DNA of 64,000 nt from Pelomyxa schiedti (taxonomy: Eukaryota > Protista > Evosea): the NCBI GenBank assembly GCA_020536535.1, contig JAHLWZ010000406.1:69531-133530 (forward strand), in the 5' to 3' direction. Positions 7,701 through 10,157 of this stretch are shown here, piece by piece. The position numbers and the translations under genes are program-made. Positions within the stretch are counted from its first letter, which is position 1. Each line of letters starts with the position of its first letter. Below the pieces are notes generated by a model, which was given only the letters and a program-made list of their open reading frames with translations, was not told where the DNA came from and did no database searches.

Positions 7701-8949
7701 TTGAGTTTGCACTGACTCGGGAGGAGGAAGACCAGGACTTAAGGTTTATTATTCAATTGTTCATCGATCCTTACGCATAAAAAGAACGTTACTAAGTAAC
7801 TTCTCGTCTGTGTGGATGGATGGTATTTCTCACCCTGAAAACACAAGGCTAACTGCTCCTAGGGAAAGTTTTACTCTTCCAACGAATCCAAAAAATGACT
7901 GGTTTAAAATTTACCAAAAGTAAGTATTGAGATGGTCAAAACAAGATGTGAAACTTTACAGGGGTGAACGAGGAATTCGAGCAACATCCAAACCAGTGGT
8001 TACTGAGAGGTGACTCTCCAATGGATATTTCTGATTTGGAAGAGATAGGACAACATGTGAAGCATATGAATATTATCTCCTATGCCCAGGGGTATCTATT
8101 TAAACATCAGGGCAGCTTACTTTTTGCAACTGATCCACTTGCTGGTACAATTGCTTGCGCTCAATCATTCGGTAACAGTTCTTCCAGCTCAACGATTTTT
8201 TTCCATGTCTATGGCCAAATTTGAGGAATCGCTTGACACTGACCCAAGCAATGCAGCAACTTTGTGTAACTATGGTCAGTGCACCTTTTCTTCGATAAGG
8301 AAATGCTCAAAATTTTTTTAGGAGATGTCCTCAGCCTCAGTATTGAAGGAGAAGCTAAGCACTTGTCCTCTATAAGATACACTCTCAGCAACCCCAAGGT
8401 TCAGCAAGCCAGATCCTATTATAAGCGTGCCATAAAGTACTTCCACTCCCCCAAAGGAATCTCACTTAACGTCAAATAAGGTTGAAACCAAATGACTCTC
8501 ACTTCCTCTTCCGATATGCACAATTCTACGAGAAATGTGACAAACCTCTACGTGCTGAGCAGCTTTACCTGAAGTCCCTGAAAGCAAATCCCAACAACTT
8601 CGCGTGCTTACAAGAGGCATGCACCCACTTGTTTTTCTACTCACTAACCACTCACTTGCAGTACGGCAATTTTCTCACTGAGCAAGGTGAACCCGATGTA
8701 GCCGAGCTTTTCTTCAAACGGTGTTCCATGTGCTCCTCGGAAGCCACCCCTGCTGCACCCACAAGTTCAACTACAAACACACCAACCCCCTCGTCATTAA
8801 CAGAAGCCCCTGAGGATATCACAACCACAACTACTACAACATCCACGACCAATTCAGAGGATTATGTGCCTCTGGACAAGGAGAAAGAGAAAGAGGAAAA
8901 GGAAACCACAAAAGATGAAGAACCAGAAGGTGGACCACAACAATCATAA
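4710..8949 (+). CDS. Clu-domain protein with C-terminal TPR-like repeats (about 20 introns)
   Basis: Motifs GGIAGGEKYIVHNILFKFA, AAKAGGHELKG, PLMALVDYRGFRLIAMS, DLEGHIGSDGRFYLLDFARVMPPE, LLRPEFV and EAMHRRGINMR. TPR-like YG/YA helices lie near the end. Confidence 0.85.
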
Positions 8950-9065: not shown

Positions 9066-9134
9066 GAGGTGCTAAGACATCAACCACATTGCGTCACTAG
9101 TGTGTTATTTGCAATGCGGAATCACAGTAGCCCC
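9066..9134 (-). promoter_or_regulatory. Eukaryotic type-2 SECIS element in the 3' UTR of the FrnE/DsbA gene
   Basis: RNA: ggggcuacu-GUGAU-uccgcauugc-AAA-uaa-CAC-acua-GUG-ac-gcaauguggu-UGAU-gucuuagcacc. It has the UGA/GA quartet, 9 consecutive pairs in helix II, unpaired AAA 11 nt above the core GUGA, an apical mini-stem and a lower helix (gcua/uagc). Confidence 0.9.
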
Positions 9135-9191
9135 AAAATATTCCCCTCACAAATAGAGTGTCCAAAGCAGGAAAGAAAACCGGCACAATGG

Positions 9192-10157
9192 TTAGAACAC
9201 TGTTTCCAATGCTTCAACAAAATCCTGTGGAGAGCAGGCACCAGATAACTCGAGCTTCCCGCGGCCAGAAAGAATGAAATGTGGAACACCATGAATTCCT
9301 TTTGATACCTTGGTAAAAAAAAACAGAAATTTGGGAAGAATGAACCTCTTCGAGAAGCCTCATGGCTCAACTGCAATATGGTATCATAGTCATCATGGGA
9401 GAGCAGGTAGTTGCGGATTGCAGTAGCATCTTCGCCCAAAGCAACAGCAACACTCACCAAAGTTTCAATGTCTCCAACATTAGCCCCTTGCTGTTGTATT
9501 CAGTAAGATATCGGCATTATGAGCTGGTTACCTCATAATTCTTCTGGAACAAATGTGAGTAGGCTTGCGTTCTCTTTTCCTTTGGCAAGTGATACACTAG
9601 GCGATGTGCATTAATCTGAGGTGCGTAACCACACATCGAAGCGTAATGGAAATGAATTAAAGAGGCCATACAGTGTTTGGAACATAGAGCCAACTAGCGA
9701 ATGGCAGTCCGTCCTGAGCTCTGCCAATATTATAAACGGGGTGCTGCTCATGTTTTGTCCACCCTTTATAAGCACTGAAAATAAAGTCATGCGTGCAGAG
9801 TCGAAAAAAACAGACCAAACGACAATAGTAGGTAATTCCGGTGCACATAATGCACATATACATAAAGTGGGAAAAACACACTTGTAGAAAGTAGCCCAGT
9901 CTTGCCCCAGAGGCGGTAAATCCGGCCTCAGAACAAACGGAGCCCATTCGACCTGCACTTGTGCTGTGGGATGCGCTTCCTTGAACAAACCTATTCCTTT
10001 GTTCATGCGCGCCTGCGTGTTTGCCAGCTGAGTTGAACAAACAAAACAGAGGTGGAATAGGAAACGGGATAAAAAAAATATGTACCTCTCCCACGTAACA
10101 CCAAGGTCAAATTACATCCGAGTACACCAGTATCTTCACCGTACCAACCGACGACAT
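9192..10157 (-). CDS. FrnE/DsbA-like thioredoxin-fold oxidoreductase, predicted selenoprotein (Sec17, UPWC)
   Basis: Exon 1 reads MSSVGTVKILVYSDVI-TGA(10109-10107)-PWCYVGE. Later exons give VEWAPFVLRPDLP, PNTINAHRL, GANVGDIETL, GIHGVPHF and LSGAC. All five introns are GT-AG and the frame is otherwise intact. Confidence 0.92.

Follow-up and report, generated by a model that had tools for sequence, protein, structure and literature searches.

A FrnE-like DsbA gene of the anaerobic archamoeba Pelomyxa schiedti with a predicted selenocysteine codon and a 3′ UTR SECIS element

Selenocysteine (Sec)-containing members of the DsbA family have been reported in bacteria, Micromonas, Ciona, and amphioxus (Branchiostoma) (PMC2874816) and belong to the most widely distributed selenoproteins of algae (PMC7539508); FrnE is also a family in SelenoDB (PMC3965025). 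Both the protein family and the mechanism of Sec insertion are already known, and neither is new here. The Pelomyxa schiedti gene described below shares with the eukaryotic Sec-DsbA/FrnE proteins of algae, Ciona, and Branchiostoma a UxxC motif with Sec in place of the first Cys, a form II SECIS in the 3′ untranslated region (UTR), and a first exon misannotated as UTR. It differs from them in its host, an anaerobic archamoeba, in the GUGA core of its SECIS, and in the presence of two diverged Sec paralogues; the likeness is one of described features.

Use of Sec in Archamoebae seems to be unreported so far; in the limited literature covered on Pelomyxa, on Mastigamoeba, and on archamoeba comparisons, no mention of selenium was found, and such a report may have been published elsewhere. 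The sequence-only reading of the locus had considered a Sec pathway notable for an anaerobic archamoeba, which holds for the group itself but less so in a broader context, because Sec is known in other amoebae, namely Dictyostelium (PMC2375036) and Acanthamoeba (PMC8038987), and in the anaerobic protists Monocercomonoides, Paratrimastix, Trimastix, and Spironucleus (PMC6759080, PMC10703272). The finding puts Archamoebae on the map of Sec-using eukaryotes. To our knowledge, Entamoeba is regarded as Sec-free, so that the Sec trait would have been lost within Archamoebae and not upon turning anaerobic.

The window analyzed is a 64,000-nucleotide stretch of the P. schiedti genome, and positions without a contig name refer to it. 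The gene is located on the minus strand (10157-9192) and comprises six exons and five GT-AG introns, giving a reading frame of 642 nt and 213 codons that ends in TAA. Exon 1 (10086..10157, codons 1-24) contains the start ATG, the first beta strand, and the U-P-W-C motif, and matches positions 2-17 of the bacterial FrnE profile (E 1.9e-6); an in-frame stop lies directly upstream of the ATG at 10157, so that no earlier ATG is possible. Exons 2 (9882..10012), 3 (9672..9774), 4 (9532..9615, with the NAHRL motif of FrnE), 5 (9346..9490), and 6 (9192..9298, with the G-V-P cis-proline loop at 9290-9282 and the TAA at 9194-9192) are all present in the gene model and in cDNA, with additional support from the public protein for exon 2, from paralogue identity for exon 3, and from the FrnE profile for exons 4 and 5. 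The sole internal stop of the 213-codon frame is a TGA at codon 17 (10107..10109), in the context D-V-I-U-P-W-C, and the second residue of the UxxC motif is Cys20 (TGT, 10098..10100). In an alignment with a profile of 119 bacterial relatives, exons 1, 2, 4, 5, and 6 align in order. Of these relatives, 107 have a CP[FW]C motif at the site of the TGA, which falls opposite its first Cys. Exon 3 matches the bacterial profile poorly; against exon 3 of a paralogue on contig C999, 22 of 30 residues are identical. The UGA is thus aligned with a conserved catalytic Cys and has homology on both flanks, the pattern by which selenoproteins are recognized. The homology searches used single exons, the natural cDNA contig, or the public protein, the joined exon model being only frame-checked. 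A DNA search of the P. schiedti assembly (52,367,397 bases in 5337 contigs; published as 52.4 Mb in 5337 scaffolds [PMC8887013]) showed that the locus is single copy.

A type II SECIS was identified on the same strand, at 9067..9134. Its helix I (9134-9128/9074-9067) begins 57 nt past the TAA and is followed by the GUGA core (9125-9122, 66 nt past the TAA), with the quartet UGAU at 9124-9121/9082-9079 and an adjoining U-U pair, a helix II of 9 bp (9119-9111/9092-9084), an AAA bulge (9110-9108), and a 3-bp apical mini-stem (9104-9102/9097-9095). The resulting geometry, GUGA-N11-AA-N27-GA, agrees with the arrangement used to recognize SECIS elements (RUGA, 11-12 nt, AA, 18-27 nt, GA, and two helices, in the 3′ UTR of the same transcript), and the hairpin is the top of 5 strict SECIS matches in 128 kb of window sequence. 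Among 5000 dinucleotide shuffles of the 250 nt past the stop, none equaled its score and 23 gave any match. The folding energy of the hairpin alone is unremarkable (z -1.5), the Rfam model SECIS_1 (RF00031) left the hairpin unscored and found no match at the locus or genome-wide, and custom SECIS models and patterns applied to the genome were too narrow or too loose for a listing of the selenoproteome. GUGA cores are known from other SECIS elements, for example, in Ostreococcus (PMC11227280). The three Pelomyxa SECIS that were checked (at this locus, in the C999 paralogue, and in SPS2) have the U-GUGA...UGAUG core in common, and their helix II sequences differ. The SECIS elements of Dictyostelium discoideum (PMC2375036) are likewise type II and also show the AAA bulge and the U-U pair that adjoins the core, but they have UGUA before the core, and DsbA is absent from the five selenoproteins of that amoeba. 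The hairpin is situated, on the selenoprotein gene's own strand, between the stop of this gene and position 8949, where the reading frame of a convergent gene ends. The last exons of the convergent gene (8482-8949, plus strand) encode a helical stretch that resembles a repeat and a tail rich in Thr, Glu, and Lys, with no NCBIfam match; because the two stops are 243 nt apart, the two 3′ UTRs may overlap.

Transcript evidence comes from one assembled cDNA contig (L035), of the Logan assembly of run SRR23919873, which belongs to a set of single-cell transcriptomes of P. schiedti whose libraries were polyadenylated in vitro (PMC10579272). The contig carries both the TGA at codon 17, not TGT or TGC, and the SECIS, its 3′ part extending past 9134 and through the hairpin to 9035; its one coding single-nucleotide difference is synonymous. 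At the 5′ end, a template-switch adapter is followed by gene sequence from inside codon 6, so that the ATG at 10157 is not reached. Introns 1, 3, 4, and 5 are spliced exactly as in the model and intron 2 (9775..9881, 107 nt) is retained, such that the contig represents no fully spliced, full-length mRNA. Nevertheless, intron 2 is real, because it is spliced in the public model and the C999 paralogue has an intron at the same position and in the same phase. Because of the in vitro polyadenylation, such libraries should contain unfinished transcripts, and they do not reveal the native poly(A) site. The retention of intron 2 (L035:200-307), with the other four introns spliced, could reflect an intermediate or regulated retention.

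Considered together with the paralogues and the Sec machinery described below, these observations make it very likely that the locus is a real, expressed gene for a FrnE-like DsbA selenoprotein, with predicted Sec insertion at codon 17. Most of what the sequence-only reading had claimed is borne out by the gene model, the profile alignment, and the cDNA: a TGA at the first Cys of the CPWC motif, at codon 17 of an otherwise intact six-exon gene; and a type II SECIS with a GUGA core 57 nt past the TAA. The check that it had called for, that the TGA and the hairpin be present in the mRNA, came out positive on one assembled contig.

The same reading had predicted that gene callers would truncate the gene, and this is the case in the public annotation. 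The public protein KAH3763192.1 corresponds to codons 27-213 of the model; it has 187 residues, starts at Met27 in exon 2, and lacks the redox motif and hence the active site, which the present model restores. That only this 187-residue form is made, with exon 1 being 5′ UTR and the TGA irrelevant, is what the public model implies, and the cDNA contig, which stops short of the ATG at 10157, is compatible with it. We nonetheless regard such a truncated product as very improbable. Exon 1 matches the N terminus of FrnE and is identical to exon 1 of the C999 paralogue at 15 of 23 residues, with synonymous changes between them; exon 1 supplies both the active site and the first beta strand of the fold; and the SECIS would serve no purpose. 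Moreover, the same annotation error was made for the DsbA genes of Ciona and amphioxus, where the first exon was lost or taken as UTR (PMC2874816).

The paralogues bear on whether the TGA is a nonsense mutation. The C999 paralogue (L037:1075-1989) has 208 codons, is 57% identical, carries a TGA at the same site and five introns at the same positions, and terminates in TGA. Its own SECIS (L037:2048-2098) lies 59 nt past its stop and has a different helix II sequence. This SECIS has UUCCAA in place of AAA, with the AA 15 nt past the core, an apical motif of the CC/CCAA type; apical AA and CC motifs both occur in the eukaryotic Sec-DsbA/FrnE family. A partial near-copy of this paralogue on contig C2679 (L042) keeps the TGA but lacks two bases in exon 1, which breaks the frame; it is a broken copy, an allele, or an amplification error. 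The broken frame of this copy, together with the frameshift that the retained intron 2 introduces into the cDNA contig, would fit a pseudogene or nonsense allele in which TGC or TGT had become TGA and the transcript, with intron 2, was non-productive. However, a nonsense mutation is very unlikely, because two genes that have diverged this far and are otherwise intact both keep the TGA and both have a SECIS of their own; furthermore, the Sec machinery looks complete, and a library polyadenylated in vitro also catches unfinished transcripts (PMC10579272). The probability of a pseudogene is put slightly below even that of the truncated product.

Searches of the genome for the Sec machinery recovered most of its components. 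A tRNA-Sec on contig C1146 (67.9 bits) has the anticodon UCA, a 9-bp acceptor stem and a 4-bp T stem (9/4 fold), a 6-bp D stem, a long variable arm, and G73 followed by oligo-T. SepSecS is encoded on C80 (E 7e-27), split into exons, and further SepSecS pieces were seen on C80 (C-terminal) and C3592 (N-terminal). Two similar copies of eEFSec lie about 8 kb apart on C87 (23500-35000), with domain III over the cut-off (PF21208). The top TIGR00475 matches were rejected as eEFSec, being HBS1, EF1a, eIF2g, and EF2. A PSTK-like gene on C857 has selen_PSTK_euk as its best family, with weak partial matches (E 1e-6 and 1.6e-5). A PF08433 match on C583 is a KTI12-family gene. SPS2, on C4, is of the Sec type, with the active site L-K-G-TGA-G followed by an intron, and a SECIS with a GUGA core about 100 nt past its stop (C4:373181-373232, minus strand; L046:1682-1733). 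In addition, an intron-rich NifS-SelD fusion gene on C853 (about 67500-69800, minus strand) has a Cys active site (GCAC) and a NifS part resembling cysteine desulfurase/Sec lyase; the pairing of SPS2 with a NifS-SPS fusion is shared with Acanthamoeba castellanii and Naegleria (PMC4561486). An origin of this machinery from a symbiont was rejected, the genes being split into exons and the tRNA having a 9/4 fold with an oligo-T tail.

The working Sec pathway proposed from the sequence alone therefore stands as far as tRNA-Sec, SepSecS, the PSTK-like gene, eEFSec, and SPS2 are concerned, but SBP2 was not found: a genome search with PF01248 (L7Ae) gave only S12, NHP2, 15.5K, L7a, and L30, and a motif scan was blank, in a search that is insensitive on intron-rich DNA (the same exon-wise approach missed PF01323 at the present gene) and in an assembly that is about 82% BUSCO-complete. 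There is a slim chance that Sec insertion in Pelomyxa, and perhaps in other Archamoebae, proceeds without a recognizable SBP2, with another SECIS-binding factor acting at the GUGA SECIS; if so, the FrnE pair would be a ready reporter for it. The ribosomal proteins L7a (C340, L029:600-1500) and L30 (C834) carry long Lys/Glu/Ala/Pro-rich repeat extensions, at the N terminus and the C terminus, respectively.

Reassignments of UGA to Cys or Trp exist in some protists. Decoding of the codon as Cys, through reassignment or leaky read-through, would restore a CPWC motif as well, yet decoding as Cys or Trp is about as improbable as a pseudogene: reassignment of the code is disfavored because the paralogue ends in TGA where this gene has TAA and because ordinary Cys codons are TGT and TGC (for example, at Cys20 and the NifS-SelD site), and, in addition, the conserved exons of other genes contain no TGA, the tRNA recovered with the anticodon UCA is folded as a tRNA-Sec, and internal TGAs were seen only at known Sec positions accompanied by a SECIS.

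If the codon is read as Sec, translation of the spliced mRNA would begin at the ATG at 10157. Once the ribosome reached the UGA at codon 17, the SECIS in the 3′ UTR, some 660 nt downstream on the mRNA, would let eEFSec bring in Sec-tRNA(UCA), which the host would make with its PSTK, SepSecS, and SPS2/NifS-SelD. Translation would then continue to the TAA, yielding a product of 213 residues. In the resulting U17-P-W-C20 motif, the chemistry of the thioredoxin fold would have the Sec17 selenolate attack a substrate disulfide and Cys20 resolve the mixed bond.

By its sequence, the protein belongs to the DsbA family and, within it, to the FrnE-like branch. The public 187-residue form matches PF01323 (DSBA) with 53.2 bits (cut-off, 25.6; E 4e-14), and its best sequence match in the PDB is Deinococcus FrnE (E 7e-12). 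The predicted fold (pLDDT 82; modeled without residues 1-26) also has Deinococcus FrnE as the nearest solved structure (TM 0.84) and is a thioredoxin fold with a helical insert and the GVP cis-Pro loop, to which exon 1 adds the [C/U]PxC motif near the N terminus. Single exons scored poorly against Pfam and PDB, and a six-frame search of the genome with PF01323 gave no match, this gene included, because the exons are short. In common with Deinococcus radiodurans FrnE (PDB 5cnw, 5xwh) and the bacterial FrnE-like DsbA proteins (PF01323), the Pelomyxa protein has the CPxC position, NAHRL, GVP, and no signal peptide; the full 213-residue protein begins directly with the first strand, which leaves no room for one. 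It differs from them in having Sec for Cys, in an identity of only about 27-35%, and in lacking the C-terminal second Cys pair, given that it stops right past the last helix. In Deinococcus FrnE, the tail with this Cys pair relays electrons. Such a tail is present in 93 of the 120 bacterial relatives retrieved and is not family-wide. The only Cys of the Pelomyxa protein besides Cys20 is C200, which is not conserved in the C999 paralogue. We infer that the active site would be re-reduced by an outside partner, a reductase.

Periplasmic DsbA of the E. coli type belongs to the same Pfam family and fold class, but its structural match to the Pelomyxa protein is far weaker (TM about 0.4, E > 0.1); the latter has no export signal, and a role as an oxidase of secreted proteins is not expected of it. 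Most likely, it is instead a cytosolic disulfide reductase or isomerase that repairs proteins after exposure to oxygen, its location and redox direction both being predictions. The gene also indicates an under-counted antioxidant inventory in the amoeba. Searches for close or eukaryotic relatives returned only distant bacterial FrnE proteins (28-41% identity), and Atlas feature matches included eukaryotic DSBA clusters.
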